A stretch of DNA of 28,764 nucleotides from Zygophlyctis sp. KS116 (GCA_054661495.1 BAAFSQ010000120.1:1-28764); one strand, 5' to 3'; shown: positions 231-20,742, counted from the first letter of the stretch. The notes: generated from the letters alone by a model not told the origin. Made by a program: numbers and translations.

Positions 231-467
231 TTAAAATCTCTTTTTTTTATTGTCTTCCTTCTTCTTGTAAGAAAAATCTTTTGTAGTTGCTGCAAACTCT
301 CCAAATTTCCTAGAAAGCATTTCTTCAGTTACGAGTATAGATACATGAGATTTTCCATTATGAATTCTAACCTGTTTTCCAATCATTGGAGGGATAACTG
401 TAGCATTCCTAGATACACTATTAATATTTGTGTTCAATAGTGGTCCTTTCCAAATGGATCTGGGCAT
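231..467 (-). CDS. RSM19: Mitochondrial ribosomal protein uS19m (nuclear-encoded), 78 aa, intronless
   Basis: RSIWKGP N-terminus, SRNATVIPPMIG, IHNGK and KFGEFAAT motifs typical of uS19. Confidence 0.88.
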   Translation of the reverse strand: MPRSIWKGPLLNTNINSVSRNATVIPPMIGKQVRIHNGKSHVSILVTEEMLSRKFGEFAATTKDFSYKKKEDNKKKRF

Positions 468-553
468 TTTTCTATTAATATACCCTTAAACTAATTACCT
501 AGACATTATTTGAAATTCAAGGGTCTAGGTTGTAAAATCTAGGGCAAGAAAAA
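468..553. promoter_or_regulatory. 86-bp divergent spacer (putative bidirectional promoter) between RSM19 and RPA190, with three CTAGG/CCTAG motifs
   Basis: Head-to-head ATGs at 467 and 554; element TGAAATTCAAGGGTCTAGGT at 511-530. Confidence 0.55.
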
Positions 554-8156: not shown

Positions 8157-10976
8157 ATGTCTCAGTTTACTGAATGGCAAATAAGACGATTTGCTTTTCT
8201 TTTTGATCAGTATTGTTCCAACATCAATGCTGTTATGAGGCTTAGTCTTGGAAGGGAGTCTCAAGTAAACTTAAATGATAGGCTGGGTGTTCATCAGCTA
8301 TGTCAAGTATTAGTATGCAATATATATCATGATGCATTAGGCTCGCTTAGGACCGCAAGTTAGTATGGACTATGCCAGGGACATTATATACCGATATGAT
8401 AGTACATGTACCGGATGCTTGGAGTATGAGGATTATCTAGAGTTTCTGGCAGATTATCAAGAAATATTGCATATTAAGCGCTCAGAGGCTATTAAGAATT
8501 ATGACAGAATGAAAAATGTATCATGGTATTTTATAAATTATTAGAGCACTGCGTATGAAGACGAGCAATTTCTGTCTTCATTTCCAGTTATAACAAATTA
8601 TATTGCCTATTTAAGGCTCGATGATCCAGAAAACTTTTTTACACAAGCCGATCCAATTACAGAAGCGATTTCTAATGATGGGTATATCAGTGATCCAAAT
8701 ATTCTTAATAGAACGATCACTGTCCGGATATTTGGCGCTAAAAATTTAAGGAGCTTTTGTAGGTAGATATCAAGTATAGACTTTTAATAGGATAAAGAAG
8801 AGAGATGGGGTTGGAATAGAATATCAGACACTTAATCCAGTCATTCGCGTATCAGTGACTGATATCATAAAATCGACTACAGTAATCTTGGGATCGGTAC
8901 TTATTTTGTTGAAAATTTTAATGTTCAGACGACGTCAGAATGGAATCAAGATCTAGTTTTTCCTATCAGAATACCTCCTGGAGAGCTTCATGATGTCCAA
9001 AGTTGGGTAGAGACGCAGAATTTTGTCTTTCATTTGTATGATTTTGTTTCTTCAGGTTTGGTGCCGTAAGTTTAAAGCTGATAATAACTATCAGACATCC
9101 AGAACTTTTAGCATTTGGTTCTATTTCTCTGAAGAGAGTTTTAATGTCAACCAGAAAACCATTTACAGCGGTTATTAAAATGAGCCCACTTCACTGCTCG
9201 TCATTAGAGCAAGATAATGTCCGTTTAGACGTGTCTTTTTCTGATTTAACGTTGGAAACATGGGCTTGGTCAAAGGTGGCGGATTCGTTTTTACATCCTG
9301 AACAAGGTAATTTATTAATTTATTCAAATTAGTATGGAATCGATTATACCCGGTCAAAATGAAGAAGGATTTAGATTCATACAGCTCGGAAAAGCAGAAA
9401 AAAGGGAATGAAGGTTCAGCATGTACTCATTTTTTGAGTTTGGTAAATCCTTTAAGGCAGATTTTTCGAAGGCGACTATTTCATGCGGTAGTATTAGACG
9501 AATGTAATACTTTTCGCTTTCTTCCTGCACTGTTAAGTAAGTTGCTGAAATCTTATTTGATAAGGGCCTATACAGACACACGATCCACGTACATATTCAA
9601 ATGATGATTTGTGCGCATCTTTATCAAATATACCATTTAAAAAGAAGACGGTTCCTTTATCAGATTATACTTGCAGTCTGCGGGAACTGCAAAATGTTCG
9701 TGAATCTGTTGGCTTTGATTCACTTCCAAGCAACCAAGTGGCAGCTTGGACCATTGCGGCCAGCCCACCAGACTTTCTTTCAGAAAATTTTTTCGCTCAA
9801 ATCTCATCACCTTCTTGTATGATTTCTAGAAGAGAAGGTTCTATTTTGGAGCATGCTATGGCACTTTGCTCTCTTCTTTTAGGAAAGGAAGAAAATGCGT
9901 ATGTCGCTATTGGTAACGTCAAGAAAAGATGTTATGTGTGGGTGATAGTTTTTAAATCAAGACAAGAAATGAATGGTCTCATGCGCAAAAATAGAATGGC
10001 TGATACAGAAGAAGAAGAAATCGAAGTTTTACAAAATGGCACATATATTTATGGGTCTTTAGATTCTTCAGAATCATTTAATGTACAAGACTTTGAACGA
10101 TTTTCTAAGACAGAAACTATAAAGGCGAAAAACAATAAGCTAACGGTTTTGCACTACGATGTTGCTACAGGAAACTGTTTTCAGTACGCTCCAGGAAACA
10201 AATTCCCATTTGATCGTATTTCTACAATATTCAACCACAAAAATATTTGGTATAATGTGCAGCATACAGATCTGATTTCGCAGTAGGTTCTTAATTTATA
10301 ATACTTAGTCCAATGTTTTCGTGGGATTTATTCATCGCTGATTGCTGGTATCCTCTTTTTTCAAAATCCTCAGCGATCATTCCGGGGTCGATTCAATGCT
10401 TTTACATGGAACCTCATTTCACTAATATTTATGAATATAAACTGGACTATGTTCGTATGGATGCGCCGTAAAATTTTTTCAGCTAAATATAGATGGATCT
10501 TGAAGGAACTTGTGTCCTTTATTCAGCTTTACAGAAAAAATATCCTGTTTATTGCTGAAACATATTTCCATCGAGAGATCTCTAGGAATATTCAGGCAAT
10601 TTTGAACCAAAAATCAGAAAAAACCACTGATCGAAAATCGATAATGTATGGCCAAGACGCCAGCCAAGCGCCTTTAGGATCTCAAATGACCTATATTATT
10701 GACACCCCAAACAAGAATGAATTGGATAAAGTGACTCTTCGAATGATCAGAGATAGGATTAATAATCTATTGCCAGATCATCATACTTGGGAGGGTTGTA
10801 TTTTTCAATTCAATGATTCTGATCTTTCAAATATCATGGAACAACTAATTTGGTCTGGTTATCTGGATTGTTCTGTTCCTGACTCTCTCTATACGATCGC
10901 ATGCAAAGTCCAGAGACGGCCATTCGGGCAAACTTCTCTCAAGCTTGTTGTCGGATATATTTATGATATTTTGTAA
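8157..10976 (+). CDS. CEP76/CC2D2A-like protein: EF-hand + C2 + transglutaminase-like domain; 9 introns (8307-8340, 8518-8544, 8763-8790, 8897-8928, 9066-9094, 9307-9332, 9537-9564, 10283-10308, 10468-10492)
   Basis: EF-hand-like YDSTCTGCLEYEDYLEFL; C2-like ITVRIFGAKNL...WNQDLVFPI...FHLYDF; GSILEHAMALCSLLLG...AYVAIG...VWV and IFNHKNIWYNVQ resemble the CEP76/DRC7 peptidase-like domain. Splicing gives a continuous frame. Confidence 0.7.
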
Positions 10977-10992
10977 GACTGCAGAATTTTAT

Positions 10993-11594
10993 TTATCCAA
11001 CTAATAAAAGAATTGATACCATTAAAACAGCCCGCTCCATATTGTTTGTATATTTCAAGTTCTTAAAGTAACTCCAACCATTCTTTGCTTTGAAGGAGTC
11101 TGAGATCTCGTTGTTGACAATGCTAGGTGAATCAATAATCCCCCGATTTGTATGGCGAGCAAACCGTGAATTAACATCATCGGGTGATGCCACACCACCT
11201 CCAATCGCCCACACAAATTTAGTCAGATCATTAATAACTGGAGTGTCACTAAGAGGCCGGGAAATGGAGCATGTCAATTTATCTGCAGATGGTGTCACGT
11301 TAGTCGCGTTAAGCGGAATTACCAAAGAATTCTGAGAATCAGAAAGGGTTGGTAGAGTATATAATGCAGCTGTACGTCTTGAAACAACACATCCTCCGGT
11401 AGAATTTTTCCAAAAAGCATATATATCTGATCCGATCATACTATTTCCTATACCAAAAGCAGCCCATCTTGTGAGTTAGAAAACTATATAATATACCCAT
11501 CACATGATAAACTCTTAGTTTGTATAGTGATATCAATGTTTTGACCATTCTGATGAGTATAAAGACAAAAACTTCCTGATGGATCACAAGGCAT
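10993..11594 (-). CDS. DOMON-domain protein (heme-binding type) with hydrophobic C-terminus; intron 11468-11496
   Basis: Spliced GWAAFGIGNSMIGSDIY motif, SRR strand, FVWAIG and FARH (candidate Met/His heme ligands); C-terminal AVLMVSILLLVG; the intron has a CTAAC branch site. Confidence 0.7.
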
Positions 11595-11677
11595 TTTCTG
11601 ATCTGTTTAATTTGACACGAAGTTAATTATCTCCGAAATAAAGCTATCTTCTCTCTTTGCCTTGATGCATTTGAAAG

Positions 11678-12934
11678 TTAAAAGACCTTTAGAGTTCCTT
11701 CAAAAAAAGAATCCTGGCTTCCTATTCGTATCTTTATTGGGCTTGAAATAGGTATCTGTGCCAACCTATTCCAAGCACGATCATCTACCGAATTCACATC
11801 TGAAACTTCAAAGATACGAATTTCCCTTAATTGCTTAATCTTGATATTGGGATCCAATTCCCATCCAGGCCCTTCCTTAATTCTATTTAAAGCTTCAATC
11901 AAACGATATTGATCAGCCTCATACCCCATCCATATCTCTAAAATTTTAATTGAAGGAGCAAACCATAACACACCCATCCCCAAAGAATTTAAAAATACTG
12001 AATGTGACTGTGAACGATGCAATGGCGTGGTATAAGGATTTTTTGGCGATCCTACACTAAGCATTGATAAGTGATGCCCACTTGCTTTAGGAAACAATCT
12101 CCAAAAGTTTTTATCTACTCTTCCAAGTCTTCCAAAAGTTTTTAATTTTGGAAGACTATAAAATAAATCCAAAATAATTTCTCCACCCAGAGTTTGAAAA
12201 TCCAGATCAATCATTAAATAAGTCAAGTTTTCTAATTTAGAAATAATTGATAACATAAGTGTTGAATCAAGTACCCATTTCTCCAACCAAGGACCACAAA
12301 AATACAATCTTGATAGAGTTTTTGGCAAATCATTAAAATCTGTAGCATTAAATATTCCACTAGTTTCTTGATACAATCGTCTTGCAAAACCTTGAAAAGA
12401 AATTGATTTCAAGACTGTACAAGACTTTAAAGGCGTTAGATCTATTCTTGCCCCGACTTCCATAAAATCCAATAATTCTATTCTAGTCAAGTCTCTAGAA
12501 TATAAAATATTTGAATTTGGAGAAATAAATGTAATTTCTGGAAAAAAATCTAGAGTATTTTGAGAATGATTTGAAACCAATAATCTTCTAAGAACCATTT
12601 TCCCATTAGTCCATGTCCTTTTAATTGCATCATGTAGTCTAGATCTTGATCCATTTCCAAGACTATTAGTGTCAAAATGGATCCAACATTGTCCAGAATG
12701 AGAAGGAAAGACTCTAATAAATGGTTTAACAGTCAGCAGACTTGGAAAACAAGGATACATTATCGGATCTGAATTCTTAAATGATGAGAGAGAGATCAAG
12801 ACTTGAATTTCCATAACCATTGACTTTACTAAATAATATAATCGTTTATTAACTGTACTCAGTCTGATCAGCCCATCCATCGGAACAAAAGAGAGTACTA
12901 GATACCAGATTTCATTAGGGATCTGCAGATTCAT
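11678..12934 (-). CDS. F-box protein with LRR-like C-terminal region, intronless
   Basis: N-terminal LQIPNEIWYLVLSFVPMDGLIRLSTVNKRLYYLV F-box signature; LxxLxL-type repeats (LPKTLSRLYF, LENLTYLMI, LPKLKTF). Confidence 0.8.
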   Translation of the reverse strand: MNLQIPNEIWYLVLSFVPMDGLIRLSTVNKRLYYLVKSMVMEIQVLISLSSFKNSDPIMYPCFPSLLTVKPFIRVFPSHSGQCWIHFDTNSLGNGSRSRLHDAIKRTWTNGKMVLRRLLVSNHSQNTLDFFPEITFISPNSNILYSRDLTRIELLDFMEVGARIDLTPLKSCTVLKSISFQGFARRLYQETSGIFNATDFNDLPKTLSRLYFCGPWLEKWVLDSTLMLSIISKLENLTYLMIDLDFQTLGGEIILDLFYSLPKLKTFGRLGRVDKNFWRLFPKASGHHLSMLSVGSPKNPYTTPLHRSQSHSVFLNSLGMGVLWFAPSIKILEIWMGYEADQYRLIEALNRIKEGPGWELDPNIKIKQLREIRIFEVSDVNSVDDRAWNRLAQIPISSPIKIRIGSQDSFFEGTLKVF

Positions 12935-13490
12935 CTCTTACCCTTTTCAACTGATGACAAGTTTCAAGATTAAGATTCCTTCGAGCCTTATAAATAGGTT
13001 CATATTCCTGCAATTGATTTTTAAATCCAATATTGGGATTAATACAGAATCTGATATTTTGTACCCAAGAATACGCCTTAAAATAATCCCAGTCCAGAGA
13101 TTCCATTAAATATGCAACTGCGACCGCTGGAGATCTAGAAATACCTCCATTACAATGTATTAATACAGATCCACCGGAATTCCGAGCATTATGAATAAAT
13201 TCAAAACAAATTGGAAAGTACTGAATCAGATTTTGAACCGGTGAGTCTGAGACTGGAACAATCTGATGCTTAAAGACTCCAGGATGCAAGTCCTTGATTA
13301 AACTAGAATAAAATAAAATCACTTACTGCTCTTCATTTACATCTCTCAAACATAGAATATGAGAAATTCCTTTAGAGAGTAAATACTCTTGAGATCTGGT
13401 AATTACATATGGGCCAATGTATAGTCCAGGTAGGATCTGTTGCATATCTCTTCTCATTTCATAAGACCATTCAGATCCAATCAAACTCAT
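12915..13490 (-). CDS. STYX: STYX-like dual-specificity phosphatase; intron 13303-13326 (24 nt)
   Basis: EWSYEMRRDMQQILPGLYIGPY, GISHILCLR, VLIHCNGGISRS and RFCINPNIGFKNQLQEYEPIY closely track animal STYX motifs. Confidence 0.82.
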
Positions 13491-13495
13491 ATTTA

Positions 13496-13769
13496 TTAAA
13501 GGGTTGAAACAATTGCATCAGTTTCAATTGCTTCAATCTCTACAATAGATTCTAAAGTGCCTAAATATTAAGAAAAGTGGTTAAAATACTCTTGATAGAT
13601 GCTGGAATATCAGCACTAAATCCCTTCATCACATCTGTAAAAATATTATGAATTATACCACCTAATTTTAATTATCAAAATTACCTTGATCCTTGATCTT
13701 TTCAATAATCTCATAGAGTACTGCAAGAGGAGTTTCATCTTTAAGAGTTATAATCAATTTTTCAATCAT
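13496..13769 (-). CDS. Peptidase inhibitor I9 (Pbi2/POIA-like), about 73 aa, absent from the ORF track; introns 13662-13684 (23 nt) and 13561-13589
   Basis: Spliced protein MIEKLIITLKDETPLAVLYEIIEKIKDQGGIIHNIFTDVMKGFSADIPASIKSTLESIVEIEAIETDAIVSTL has the I9 hallmarks IITLK, GG.I.H, KGFSA and IE.D..V. Confidence 0.78.
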
Positions 13770-13776
13770 TTTGAGA

Positions 13777-15288
13777 TTATTCCTTGACAGAGTAAAATTT
13801 GTTTCTCTGGATTTGATCAGCGACTGATGATGAATTGGAGTTTACAAGTTTTTGACGAAGAGAGTGTGAAAATGAGTCTGTAAAAGTAGACTTTATAGCA
13901 GACTCTTGTTTTTGTAATAATTGTAATTTTCCATTTCTAGCTTCTTCAAGATTTTTAGCCGCAGCTTGCATTGCAGCGAGTTTTTCCAATTTTTCCTGGT
14001 CAAGAGAGTTATGTTTTGGAGAGGGTGATCTTCTTCTTCTTGCTTCCATAGATGGTGATCTTCTACGTCTTGACTCCACAGGAGATGGTGATCTTCTACG
14101 TCTTGATCCAGAAGGAGATGGTGATCTTCTACGTCTTGATCCAGAAGGAGATGGTGATCTTCTACGTCTTGCTTCCATAGATGGTGATCTTCTTCTTCTA
14201 GACTCCACAGGAGATGGTGATCTTCTAGGTCTTGATTCAACAGGAGATGGTGATCTTCTTCTTCTTGCTTCCATAGATGGTGATCTTCTTCTTCTTGATT
14301 CAATAGATGGTGATCTTCTACGTCTTGATCCAGAAGGAGATGGTGATCTTCTACGTCTTGATCCAGAAGGAGATGGTGATCTTCTACGTCTCGATTCAAC
14401 AGGAGATGGTGATCTTCTACGTCTCGATTCAACAGGAGATGGTGATCTTCTACGTCTTGACTCAACAGGAGAGGGTGATCTTCTACGTCTTGATCCAGAA
14501 GGAGAGGGTGATCTTCTACGTCTTGATCCAGAAGGAGATGGTGATCTTCTACGTCTTGACTCCACAGGAGATGGTGATCTTCTACGTCTTGACTCCACAG
14601 GAGATGGTGATCTTCTACGTCTTGACTCCACAGGAGAGGGTGATCTTCTTGATTCAATAGAGGGTGATCTTTTTCTTCTTGATCCAGTAGGAGAGGGTGA
14701 TCTTCTACGCTTGGTAGAATTAATAGATTGATGATCAGATTTCTTGGACCCATCCGTTTCTTTTGACCTCTTCAACTTTTTCAATTGCATAGGATTTGCC
14801 AAAACAGCTTCCATTGACATTTTCTCTCTCTTTCTAGGAATAAATTTTTATAATAATCTATACCTTATTGCCAATAATGGATCTTCCCTCACCTTTGCTT
14901 GAAAATCTCTATCAGAATTAGCCTGAAACCCATAAAAAGCAGAATTACTTTTTGAATAAGAAACTAGAGTTTCTTTTGCCTGTACCAAATCATCAATTCT
15001 CTTCCTTCCTAATAAATATGCTTCCTTATCCTCATCTACTGTACCATCCTGATTAGCTGAAGCAGCATACATCCATTCCAACCTAGAAGACTTTTTCTTT
15101 ACTCTTCCCGCCGCCTCCGCAACCGACTGTAATTCCTCTCGTCTCCTCTCTTCCTCCTTTTCCTTTCGAAGCTGAAGCATCTTTTTATCTTCTTCCTCTT
15201 GAGCCTTTTCTCTCTGCCATACTAGCTCAATATTCTTAAAAGTTGCTGGATGCCAAGACTTTTTGAGATTCAAATCGCCACCGCCCAT
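13777..15288 (-). CDS. CWC25: Pre-mRNA splicing factor Cwc25 with an expanded RS/RSPSP repeat; intron 14834-14863
   Basis: MGGGDLNLKKSWHP N-terminus, RLEWMY, EAYLLGR and KVREDPLLAI motifs. Confidence 0.92.
14022..14710 (-). repeat. Coding minisatellite, about 22 units of 30-33 bp encoding (S/A)RRRRSPS(PVE/PSG/ME)
   Basis: Repeated GGTGATCTTCTACGTCTTGA core on the + strand. Confidence 0.92.
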
Positions 15289-15318
15289 TTTAAACTGCAG
15301 GGTTTTTCAACGGTGGCC

Positions 15319-15924
15319 ATGCTCGTTTTGTTAATTGGAGATTCGTACATCCCATTCAACTCTCCAGACTTGCCATTGAAATTCAAGAAATTGCTAACTC
15401 CAGGGAAAATATCAAAGATTTTATGCACTGGAAATCTAAATTTAAATCTGACTGTAGACTATCTAAAGACAATTTGCAATGATATTACTTTTGTAGGCGG
15501 AGAGTTTGATGATAATTCAGTGACTGTACAAACAATAGAATTTGGGCAATTAAGGTTTGGATTGATCTCTGGTTATAGCATGATTCCTTGGAATAATGAC
15601 AGGATTTGGGAAATAAAGGCAAGGGAATATAATTTAGATGTACTGATATCTGGTTTTGGAAATGGTTTTTGGGCAAAGGAAAGTGATGGGAGGTTTTATG
15701 TCAATCCAGGGAGTTGTACTGGAAGTTATTTTCATGTATTTTATTAATTTTTAAAATTATAGAACTCTAGCAACTCTTTAACTGGGAATGAAAATACTCT
15801 AGAAACTTGTCCATCTTTTGTGTTAATGGATGTACATGAATCAAGTGTTGTTTTTTATATTTATAAATTGATAAATGGAGATGTAAAGGTGGAAAAGATG
15901 GAGTTTAAAAAGAAAATATTCTAG
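15319..15924 (+). CDS. VPS29: Retromer subunit Vps29; intron 15736-15762
   Basis: [46 protein letters not shown] and [19 protein letters not shown]. Confidence 0.92.
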
Positions 15925-15951: not shown

Positions 15952-18900
15952 TTAAGAGTCTATATTGAAGTCAAGACCTTTAAGATTGATGGATTTTCTT
16001 ACATCTTGCATTTTACGGTTTAATGTTGATCGCCTCTTGGATTGTGAGGCTAAAAGAGAATGGCGGCGGAGAACATATTCTGGGTCATCAAAGTCTACAG
16101 TAGTAGATGCTGCATTAGATAGAATACTGTTTGTATGTCCACGAGAGTTATTGTCTACAAAGATTTGACCACCAGTTATTTGGGCTGAGAGTCTATTTAC
16201 TATTTTACGGCGAGTGGTTTCAAATTTTGAGTCTTCAAATAAGTCATCTGAGCTATTGTCTTTTTTTATAGTGTCTGTGGATGCCATGCTGTTTTGAGAT
16301 AAGGTGCTTGATGTTGAAGCTAAATCATTTAATTCACTGTTAAAAGAAGATGCAGAGGCTGAATTTAAGATGGCTTGTTTTTTTAACCGAAATGCATCAT
16401 TCTTCTTCTTTTTTTCAGTCTCTGATCTTGCATTAGCGGCAGCATCTTTAAAGGTTTGAAAAAATAAATCTAAAGAGACAAATATATACACTGGAGATTT
16501 TTTACTTTCTTTAGATGGGTCCTGATGATCATTAATGATGTTATAATATTCTGATTTGTCCTCTCCGAAATATAAGAGTGTATCCAACCATGCATGGATA
16601 AAGTTTTTAAATCGCTGATTGAGTTTTTCTAAAATTTCAGAGGAATTTTTGAAGAACTTTTGAAGAATAAGTTCAAAACTTTTGTCCTTAAATTGATGGC
16701 TCTTCAACTTTTTTTCAGTTGCTTCCATGGTTAGAAATTGTATATAGAATTCTCTAATGTCGAATGATTTTACAATATTAAGTCCAGCAAAACTGTTTTC
16801 AAGGCCCAATAACTACAAGTCAGTAAAAATAATAAATGAAAAACCTCGGGGTAATTATTGTGTATCATATCAACAAGAAAAGTGATAAGACTCCACTTCC
16901 CATCCGCACTTTTAACGTCTCTTAGTCGGGCCAGGCCGTCAATCTTAAATCCGGCTGCTCTAGCGTTATTTCCCATCCATGGTCTAAAACTAGAATTTCC
17001 AGCGCTATATTCATAATTAGTTAAATTGCCAAGTTCTAAAACAAGTTTTAATAGCTTTTTTAGCCTAACTGAAGATCGTAACTCAAAGCATAGATTTATC
17101 ACTATATCGAGTTTTTCTATCAGCTCATCACTTTCAAATTTTAATTGCAGTTTGAATACAAAAGCAAGGACCTGATATGGGAGGTCTTCAATTTTCGACA
17201 CTTCAATCAGAAATGCTTCAGCGGGAGCAAAAGGAAGATCTGGATTTTCAGGAGCATTTCGAATCATTTTACGCTCTTCAAATGTTGGTAAAAGGGCTTG
17301 ATATGTGACTAAATCATCTGCATCCATTAAAGTCTCATCCATGCGAGAAATTGCACCAACGAGCATTTCTGGTGTCAATCCTCTACGAGTAAATCTTGAG
17401 AGGCCAATTAATATATTATTGCTCCTTCTAGTGTCCAAAAAAGAATTAAACTGAGCCCTTAAGATTAAATATTTTACAATAGATAATATACCTTTGAACA
17501 ATATTAGTATTTTTGTTCTTGGCACCTGGAATCACACAAAAAAGTTCTAAAAGCTATTAAATAGAACCAAAAATACCTTCAAATTTTTGGACGTCTAGCT
17601 GTATATCATAATCGAGTTGTTTCCAAACAGAATCATCATCAATATTACGCAAAACACTCCAATGAAGCTTATTTTTCACTCTTTTTAAGTTATTCTGAGA
17701 TTTGTCTCCTGGCATTAGAGGTGTGGGCGGTGTTCCTGGTGGGGGCGGTGCTACTGGCGGAGGGGGTGCTACTGGCGGAGGAGGTGCTACTGGTGGAGGA
17801 GGTGCTACTACTGGTGGAGGCGGTTCTAATGGTGGAGTATCTGAGGATTTTACAACTTGCATTGATGATTCGGGTGGCCTGGCAGACATACTTTCACGTT
17901 TGGAGGAGGATCTTAAAAGATGCTCTGAGTTTAAAGGTAATGCTTGGCCTGAATCTGGTATGTTCTTTGCTAAAGTCATTGTAGAAGAGATATCAGACTG
18001 TCCACCCTGAAAATTTGGTTCATCTGAAAAGAAAACTGAAGATGTTTGAATAGAAACTGATGATCGTTTCTTCGACGAACCACGAGATTGGTCAAGCTCT
18101 TTAGATGAATTACTAGATTCATGTAAATTAGCAATAGTATTAGACAAAGCATGGCCTTCTTTAATAGGTATCGGCATTAGTTGTTCTAACTCCTCTATTA
18201 GCTGTTCATTATTTGAATAAGGCTTTTGCACCAAATTCGCTATTGTACCAGACTGATTTTCATCTCTAAATACTGCTGAATTTAAATGATCCAAAATAGA
18301 TGAAGTAGGCTGATTATTCGCAGTTGTAATATTCTGGAAAGCTTTTTTAGAACTTGTTTCTTTTGTTCCTTCCATAAAAGGCTGATTTTCACTTGCTAAA
18401 TGAATATCTGAAAATGAGGTATCGATAGTTCCAAGTCGATCTTTAGCTGATAATTTAGTAGATGAGGATTTTTTTGAGAATGTTCCATCTTGACTGGCCA
18501 GTTCTAGCTTAAATGAATCGAAATCACCAGAGACCATTTTTTCTTTGCTATGTAAAAGATTATTGATAGTGCTTAGCCATCGATCTGCCCATTCATTATT
18601 ATCAGGATCACCTTCCAGCATGCTATTTTGGTCAATTTGTCCCGGCTTTTTTCGAGCAGATGATTTTGGAGGCCTTGTTTGAGAAGATTCAAAACTGCTG
18701 CCGGATCTATCATCTGTGATGGCCATATCCACTGCTGAGTGAGGTTGGTATTTCTGATATTTTGAATTCGCTTCTCGGTCGAAGGCAATCTGCTCTTTGT
18801 CATTGTGTTTCAGTTTTTCAGAAGATTGATACTTTTCTTCATTCTGACTTAAGGAACTCTTCCTCACGCCGTAAGAATTATCACCTCGATTATCCTCTTC

Positions 18901-20742
18901 TATACTACTCCGAGAAGAATTAAGCGAGCTATTTGCACTGTTGATTTCTCTTGATTTATATGATTGTTTTCGGGTATGCCTTGAATTTTCCTCTTTAATA
19001 CTTGCGACACTTTTGGATTCATAATCCGCATATGATCGCTTCAAATAAACCATTTCGTCATTTTCGGCTCGAAAACTACTTGAATGAAAATCTTCAGATT
19101 TAGCAAGTTTCTTTAGAATCTTGAAAGCCCCCTCCAAATCATTTTTTGAGCGCTGAAGAGCAAAAGAAGCTAATATTAGTAAAGCTTTGTAAAATACAAA
19201 TTATTGTCCCTTGTCCCATTGATGTCAGCCTATCCGTCAACTTTTGATCAGCTTGGACAGAGTGACTATCCACCAACTTTTGCAAACATGATAAGACATC
19301 GCGATCCATTGCGTTTTCGTAGGAGATTTCTTCTTCCTTGCTAATTTCATCTGCAGTGCGAACGTCAATCTCCAGAGAAAATTTCCCCAATTCTTTAGGT
19401 GATGTATACCAATCAATATCTTTTTTTAGTATTCGAATAACCCCTGGGGGCATATATCCTGTATGAAAGGTGAACTGAAATAATTTTTCAATAACCTCCC
19501 CGTTATCATCATATGTATTAAGTCTTATCCTGAGCTCGTTTTTCAAGTTTAAAGACTTGTTAACCATCAGATCAAAAATTAAGGTATTTCGGTATTGAAA
19601 CATACAGTTGGTAATTGGCAATAAAGAATTAGGCTTTGGAGTTTGAAAATCATCTATGGCATGTCCATATGATTTAAAAACACAATCTGCTTTTTCAAAC
19701 AATTCAAGTCCAATGTTTCCATTCTTTGACTTTTTGATAGTATTAAACCCATGAACAGATATCCTTTCCACTAAAATCCCATTTGGATTTGGAACTTTTC
19801 CATCGGTAGCAATTATATTTGCAAAATACATTGCATATCTATAGATACCGATATTAAGCCTTAATCTTCTCCTTACACAAACAAAGTCTAAAGCTTCCAT
19901 CCCATCATCAAAAAACCCAGCATAAATAAGCCAGCATGCTGCCACCAAAGCTGAGTAAGTGCCTTTCAAGCAGTGGATAATTGCAACATTGGAAAAATCA
20001 AGAGTAATCCACGCATCTATAGATCTAGATATATCTAAAAGAGTAGAGATGGTACAATCAGATGATTTAGAAAGCTTATAATTTACAACCTGATGATTAA
20101 ATATTGAAAAATCATATTCAGCAATTGAGTTACCCACTAGAATTTAATCCAATTTCCAACTTACTTCCTAAATTCCAAATCATATAATTATCATTGAACC
20201 TCTTTTTAAGAAATATAGATCCATCCAATATATTATTCCGCCGATGCCTTCTGCTAGATTCATTCTTCCAAAATAATCCTCCTAATATTAATCTATTTGT
20301 AATCCTTGTAAAATCGATGGTTCTGATTATATTCAATAATTTTTCATCAGTCTTTGGAATTGGTAGTGGTCCAGTTCCAAATAGAAATGACTTTTTTTTG
20401 GGAAATTCAATGAGCTTTAAAGGCGAAGGAAAGAATGGATCTCTTGTTAAGAGCGATAGTTCATTGAATTGTGAATTTTGACCATCTTGTGCCAGAAAGT
20501 CATCAGTATTAAAATCATCCCGACTTTCTGTTACAAAATTCATTTGACTCTGTATTTTGAATTCATTGATAACTGCATTCATCTGATTTGACTGTTGTCC
20601 AATAACATCTTCTGAATCATGATGATCTGCTGTGGTGATTTTAGCCTTTTTATATCCAGACACTGCTACTTTTTCTCCAGTAACTACAGAAAATAGAGCC
20701 TTGGATAAGATAAAAATAAGACAGTACCTTTATCAGTGACAT
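15952..20742 (-). CDS. Formin with PTEN-like phosphatase, C2, UBA-like, FH1 and FH2 domains; introns 20700-20727, 20137-20164, 19170-19197, 17546-17576, 17458-17491, 16813-16844
   Basis: PTEN-like IDFTRITNRLI, YMIWNL, AIIHC and LFQFTFHTGYM; polyproline FH1; FH2 KLHW, FLDTRRSNNILIGL, LELGNLTN, AAGFKIDGLARLRDVKS. Confidence 0.88.

Follow-up and report, generated by a model that had tools for sequence, protein, structure and literature searches.

Known systems of packed and shared transcription

Overlapping transcription of neighbouring genes is described for the compacted genomes of the microsporidia Encephalitozoon cuniculi and Antonospora locustae and for nucleomorphs (Williams 2005, via PMC2099475; PMC2803860; PMC2742732), and RACE experiments in Encephalitozoon have revealed 5' UTRs shorter than 7 nt, an AAUAAA close to the stop, transcripts that run on into neighbouring genes, and translation of a single ORF (PMC2803860, PMC2742732). 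Agaricomycetes harbor polycistronic units that were defined by long reads and whose inter-ORF distance averages 364 nt (PMC4503453), and green algae possess translated polycistrons, in which gene pairs lie 10-fold closer than the background and which need a weak start context in the upstream gene (PMC7896298). A further system, that of caliciviruses and influenza B, involves TURBS-dependent reinitiation, with stop and start codons located a few bases apart (PMC5972666). For chytrids, no paper describing either polycistronic transcripts or transcription that overlaps between genes came to light in the literature searched.

The locus described here belongs to an uncultured lake fungus, a chytrid that is detected in lake samples and whose assembly comprises 12.7 Mb in 1175 contigs. 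The window, which is the whole stretch of DNA analyzed (28,764 nt), carries on its minus strand a chain of five genes (CWC25, an I9-like gene, a phosphatase, an F-box gene, and a DOMON-like gene) that follow each other with gaps of 7, 5, -20 and 83 nt. The packing of this chain is that of the genome at large, and represents a chytrid case of a known packing type. Like microsporidia and nucleomorphs, the chain displays tiny spacers in all orientations, a putative poly(A) signal at the stop, a conserved order of unrelated genes, and tiny introns; unlike microsporidia, its host is intron-rich (approximately 3.5 introns per gene) and gene-rich, its start context is A-rich with no CCC-like motif ahead of the ATG, and its overlapping transcripts are predicted from gene anatomy. 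The Agaricomycete units resemble the chain in being composed of co-oriented, unrelated fungal genes, for which read-through is plausible, but are defined by long reads and far more widely spaced, whereas the chain, with gaps of 5-7 nt, is known from DNA. Green-algal polycistrons share with it a short upstream ORF (here, the I9-like gene) and conserved collinearity; in contrast to them, the gaps of the chain are the tail of the genomic background, and the start contexts of its upstream genes are normal. The likeness to TURBS systems is limited to the proximity of stop and start, with TAATG or ATGA contacts in single orthologs, while UGGGA is missing from the chain and its geometry is not conserved.

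A packed chain of five genes

CWC25, a splicing factor of 493 aa (15288-13777, on the minus strand as are all genes of the chain), carries the Pfam domains Cir_N and CWC25 above cut-off and a single 30-nt intron (14863-14834). Its stop codon, overlapped by an AATAAT, is separated by a 7-nt spacer (13770-13776) from the ATG of the I9-like gene (13769-13496), which encodes a 73-aa protease inhibitor of the S8 propeptide type and is interrupted by introns of 23 nt (13684-13662) and 29 nt (13589-13561). Five nucleotides (13491-13495) lead from there to the STYX-like dual-specificity phosphatase (13490-12915; 183 aa; 24-nt intron at 13326-13303), recognized through Pfam DSPc and alignment, and the AATAAA reported as spanning the I9 stop is present at 13497-13492. 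The 3' end of the phosphatase gene overlaps the following gene by 20 nt (12915-12934), the ATG of the latter being located at 12934; this intronless gene (12934-11678) encodes a 418-aa protein of a chytrid family that carries a Pfam F-box domain, and its named relatives are all chytrids. A spacer of 83 nt (11595-11677), which is also the median length of tandem gaps in the sampled part of the genome, precedes the DOMON-like gene (11594-10993; 190 aa; 29-nt intron at 11496-11468; AATAAA at the stop), whose resemblance to the CDH cytochrome domain is a Pfam CDH-cyt match under cut-off (E 9e-5). All introns of the chain genes measure 23-30 nt.

Both ends of the chain are tight as well, in orientations that do not allow polycistrony, and serve as controls. 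VPS29 (15319-15924, plus strand) is placed head-to-head with CWC25, with ATGs 30 nt apart, and a CEP76-like gene (8157-10976, plus strand), supported by Pfam and its gene model, is convergent with the DOMON-like gene, their stops lying 16 nt apart. The 30 nt between the divergent ATGs (15289-15318) are a candidate minimal bidirectional promoter; the corresponding distance is 17-145 nt in five relatives, the shortest being found in L007.

The five gene models were returned unaided by a purpose-written gene finder, whose self-training used the window together with 200 kb of the four largest contigs. It is conceivable that the tight gaps arose artefactually, from misplaced start codons or spurious gene boundaries, since the same gene finder produced one false split (RPA1, at 2332-2343). 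However, orthologs support the N-terminus and the stop assigned to each of the five genes: among seven relatives, the F-box protein has its Met 2-7 residues ahead of the motif in five, the other two being N-terminally partial, and the next in-frame Met of the phosphatase already falls within its conserved N-terminal motif. An artefactual origin is already largely refuted, and is very unlikely. The packed chain proposed in the earlier note therefore stands with all its gaps, and the start codons, whose mis-assignment had been named as a ground for abandoning it, are supported by orthologs.

The I9-like gene is absent from the ORF track, but is a real gene as confirmed by orthologs in the relatives L007, L010, L011 and L016 and in Batrachochytrium (L017); its last two introns and its reading frame are kept in five other lineages. 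Searches of the PDB with single-exon profiles yielded weak matches that are collinear with protease propeptides, to the proteinase K propeptide region for exon 1 (E 0.028) and to an 81-aa 'Protease' chain for exon 2 (E 0.21), while no Pfam match (I9 being PF05922) was obtained with single exons as queries. The I9 label, so far weakly tested, is a likely one.

The phosphatase had been labeled STYX. In human STYX, Gly replaces the catalytic Cys. The relationship to STYX-like dual-specificity phosphatases (DSPc) holds, but the HCxGxSR motif is intact and its Cys is invariant in 13 aligned sequences, features by which a pseudophosphatase identity was rejected at the level of predicted protein. The best named matches of this phosphatase are chytrids.

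Several other features of the window deserve mention. The SR-rich linker of CWC25 is encoded by a 33-nt unit repeated 19.5 times (14018-14649), an array that much exceeds that of relatives in length and regularity, and several public contigs end nearby. The neighbouring formin (15952-20742, minus strand; 1536 aa) displays an N-terminal PTEN-like/C2 region, a proline-rich FH1 and an FH2, a plant class II-like architecture that has been reported in chytrids. At the contig start, AT-rich tandem repeats (1-154) are adjacent to the nuclear gene of a ribosomal protein S19 of organelle type (231-506, minus strand), located 47 nt head-to-head from RPA1.

The gene block in relatives

The block was compared with loci of four environmental relatives (L007, L010, L011, L016) and of Batrachochytrium dendrobatidis (L017). 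In the latter, CWC25, I9 and phosphatase follow each other with spacers of 235 and 435 nt, and AATAAA is present at the CWC25 stop; in strain JEL423, the I9-like gene located between the two others (L017:9116-9565) is absent from the called genes. Among the environmental relatives, the gap between CWC25 and I9 is 0, 20 or 6 nt, that between I9 and phosphatase 16, 8, -1 or 235 nt, and that between phosphatase and F-box +8, -4, +20 or +182 nt. In L016, I9, phosphatase and F-box are present in this order; the contig extends a further 350 nt upstream, and nothing in this stretch matches CWC25. A DOMON ortholog is present in L009/L010, and was not found in L007, L011 and L016; in Entophlyctis, the F-box gene is still convergent to the CEP76-like gene. 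Metagenome scans yielded no loci with the F-box protein, and 39 loci with the phosphatase, none of them accompanied by I9, F-box or CWC25.

Synteny in related chytrids, which the earlier note had proposed as a check, thus gives a divided answer: the order CWC25, I9, phosphatase is, as judged from these loci, old, but the geometry of its junctions varies from -20 to 435 nt. The 20-nt overlap between phosphatase and F-box looks like a lineage-specific C-terminal extension. It is of note that in L011 the CWC25-I9 gap stays within 0-20 nt though the other gaps amount to 182-235 nt, an observation compatible with coupling of the two genes or with a promoter of I9 that has become fixed within CWC25.

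Packing and orientation across the genome

Spacing statistics were obtained from ab initio models over 229 kb, made up of the window and the 200 kb that had served, with it, to train the gene finder. This sample is 88% coding, 6% intron and 6% intergenic, and thus compacted in all orientations; its density of approximately 590 genes per Mb, which the choice of large contigs may overstate, exceeds that of Rozella (497-535 genes per Mb; PMC8042348). Its 474 predicted introns have a median length of 27 nt, and 95% of them measure at most 31 nt.

Gaps differ with orientation (Kruskal P 1e-5), with medians of 24.5 nt for convergent (n=30), 83 nt for tandem (n=70, including the false RPA1 split, later dropped to leave 69) and 130 nt for divergent pairs (n=31); without the window, the respective values are 24.5, 89 and 133 nt. 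Convergent gaps of at most 30 nt are found in 19 of 30 cases, and divergent gaps of at most 50 nt in 9 of 31, so that both promoter and terminator signals already fit within, or overlap, neighbouring genes. An additive model, in which each gene contributes one promoter and one terminator and a tandem gap approximates the mean of a convergent and a divergent one, predicts a tandem median of 77 nt, as compared to the 83 nt observed, and 6-8 tandem gaps of at most 12 nt, as compared to 8 of 69, although its fit to the shape of the distribution is imperfect (KS P 0.01-0.05).

Since 8 of 69 tandem junctions measure 12 nt or less, a run of three tight junctions does not exceed what chance would produce in this genome, in which 0.5-1.8 such triples are expected. 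The stop-to-start check on these 229 kb hence does not set the chain apart from the background. Same-strand neighbours make up 53% of pairs, a proportion indistinguishable from random (P 0.48), and no excess of co-oriented runs was detected in the sample. Other tight tandem pairs link unrelated genes, such as an acyl-CoA dehydrogenase and a gene of unknown function, or NMD3 and a glycosyltransferase, where the NMD3 stop lies 1 nt from the next ATG (L033:7167). On contig C4, a TAATG stop-start overlap joins a gene of 671 aa to a histone deacetylase (L033:4409-4413).

Signals at the junctions

Among tandem junctions of at most 35 nt, 4 of 14 carry AATAAA at the stop, as compared to 3 of 53 longer ones. 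The A-rich start context could mimic such an enrichment, and for this reason stop and start contexts were shuffled; 0.66 occurrences are then expected at the tight junctions (P ~0.002), or 0.54 against 3 of 11 when the window is left out (P 0.012). Tight tandem junctions are hence enriched in putative poly(A) hexamers at the stop of their upstream gene, whereas an operon should avoid such hexamers at its internal stops.

Within the chain, the CWC25 and phosphatase stops carry variant hexamers only. These weak hexamers, at two of three stops, would suit a dominance of read-through, in which most transcripts span several genes, as in Agaricomycetes, and downstream proteins arise from a minority of independent transcripts; in fungi, read-through is common and downstream genes are also independently transcribed (PMC4503453), and it is known from Encephalitozoon as well. 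This possibility, which only degree separates from the model preferred below, is unlikely: four loci contain genes with a CID domain, as found in termination factors of the Pcf11 type, with orthology unassigned, whereas E. cuniculi is devoid of Pcf11. Two lake metatranscriptomes yielded five contigs of 129-183 nt, none of which bridges a tight junction; one runs gapless through the phosphatase intron, and may be DNA.

Upstream of genes, CGCG-core, GACGTC, TCCGAT and AAACCCT motifs are enriched genome-wide within 120 nt of ATGs, where they are candidate promoter elements, and the CpG observed/expected ratio rises from 0.56 to 0.86. Inside upstream coding sequences at tight junctions, CG motifs show no significant enrichment (P 0.23-0.67), and synonymous conservation rises only slightly (61% vs 53%, P 0.13); it is on account of these two tests that promoters embedded in upstream genes are spoken of conditionally here. 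No ApT enrichment was observed near starts, and a sigma-70 promoter scan, of no relevance here, remained at chance level.

A polycistronic precursor resolved by spliced-leader trans-splicing would be expected to leave acceptor signals before downstream ATGs. In L007, a pyrimidine tract followed by CAG lies just 5' of the F-box ATG (L007:5771-5790), a feature of one relative that is not general. Within the 40 nt that precede ATGs, the best acceptor scores have a median of 1.5, not above that of antisense sequence (1.8) and far under that of real acceptors (4.6), and an excess of co-orientation is absent. The trans-spliced operon was rejected on the missing acceptor signal, and is exceedingly improbable.

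Another scheme is that at least one junction, at best CWC25-I9 or I9-phosphatase, lies on a true bicistronic mRNA whose second ORF is reached by termination-reinitiation. The gaps of the chain fall in the range of reinitiation, and stop and start are in direct contact in single orthologs (0 nt in L010, TAATG in L007, ATGA in L016) and in the TAATG pair on contig C4; the CWC25-I9 gap stays at 0-20 nt in four lineages, the I9 gene is short, as are the upstream ORFs of algal bicistrons (PMC7896298), and start contexts are good in all genes of the chain. However, the geometry varies, from -1 to 435 nt for I9-phosphatase and from -20 to 182 nt for phosphatase-F-box, UGGGA, which 9 of 109 other junctions carry 30-90 nt ahead of the stop, is missing from all 14 tight ones, the stops of tight junctions show a surplus of poly(A) hexamers rather than a deficit, the count of tight pairs equals that predicted by a monocistronic model, and reinitiation after long ORFs is thought to be very rare (PMC5972666). 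TURBS-dependent reinitiation was rejected on the missing motif and unconserved geometry, and leaky scanning on the 19, 6 and 14 intervening ATGs to be bypassed, upstream start contexts not being weak either. A bicistronic junction is unlikely overall. Native nuclear bicistrons that employ TURBS-free reinitiation at approximately one in ten tandem junctions, with CWC25-I9 as the oldest case, are likewise improbable; if they did exist, they would represent a rare cellular case of reinitiation following long ORFs.

Probable overlapping monocistronic transcripts

The chain is probably not an operon, since the whole genome is squeezed likewise in every orientation. The co-linearity on which the earlier note based its operon-like polycistron is real, but the absence of a co-orientation excess, the unrelated functions, the unconserved gaps, and the lack of a TURBS-like motif or acceptor leave that polycistron with no positive support. 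Its second model, with promoters and poly(A) sites inside neighbouring coding sequences, is backed by orientation statistics, hexamer placement and orthologs. Monocistronic, overlapping transcripts with some read-through are thus the probable explanation (approximately 0.7), supported by the convergent < tandem < divergent order of gaps and its additive prediction, by the unrelated genes of other tight pairs, and by the same gene order with wide spacers in Batrachochytrium.

In such a model, an old block of functionally unrelated genes would have become compressed as non-coding DNA was lost across the genome, and RNA polymerase II would still transcribe each gene from a minimal promoter of its own. 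At tight junctions, this promoter would occupy the final tens of bases of the preceding coding sequence, or else the 5' UTR would be a few bases long. Cleavage and polyadenylation would take place 10-30 nt past the stop-fused hexamer, a position already within the beginning of the following gene. Transcripts would consequently overlap, some reading through, and only the 5'-most ORF of each mRNA would be translated.

Microsporidian-grade gene packing extends to an intron-rich, gene-rich chytrid, in whose packed genome annotators will fuse or miss genes. In addition, the same block in relatives constitutes a graded series at a single junction (435, 235, 16, 5, and -1 nt), a natural experiment in which promoters and poly(A) signals may be followed as they move into coding sequence.
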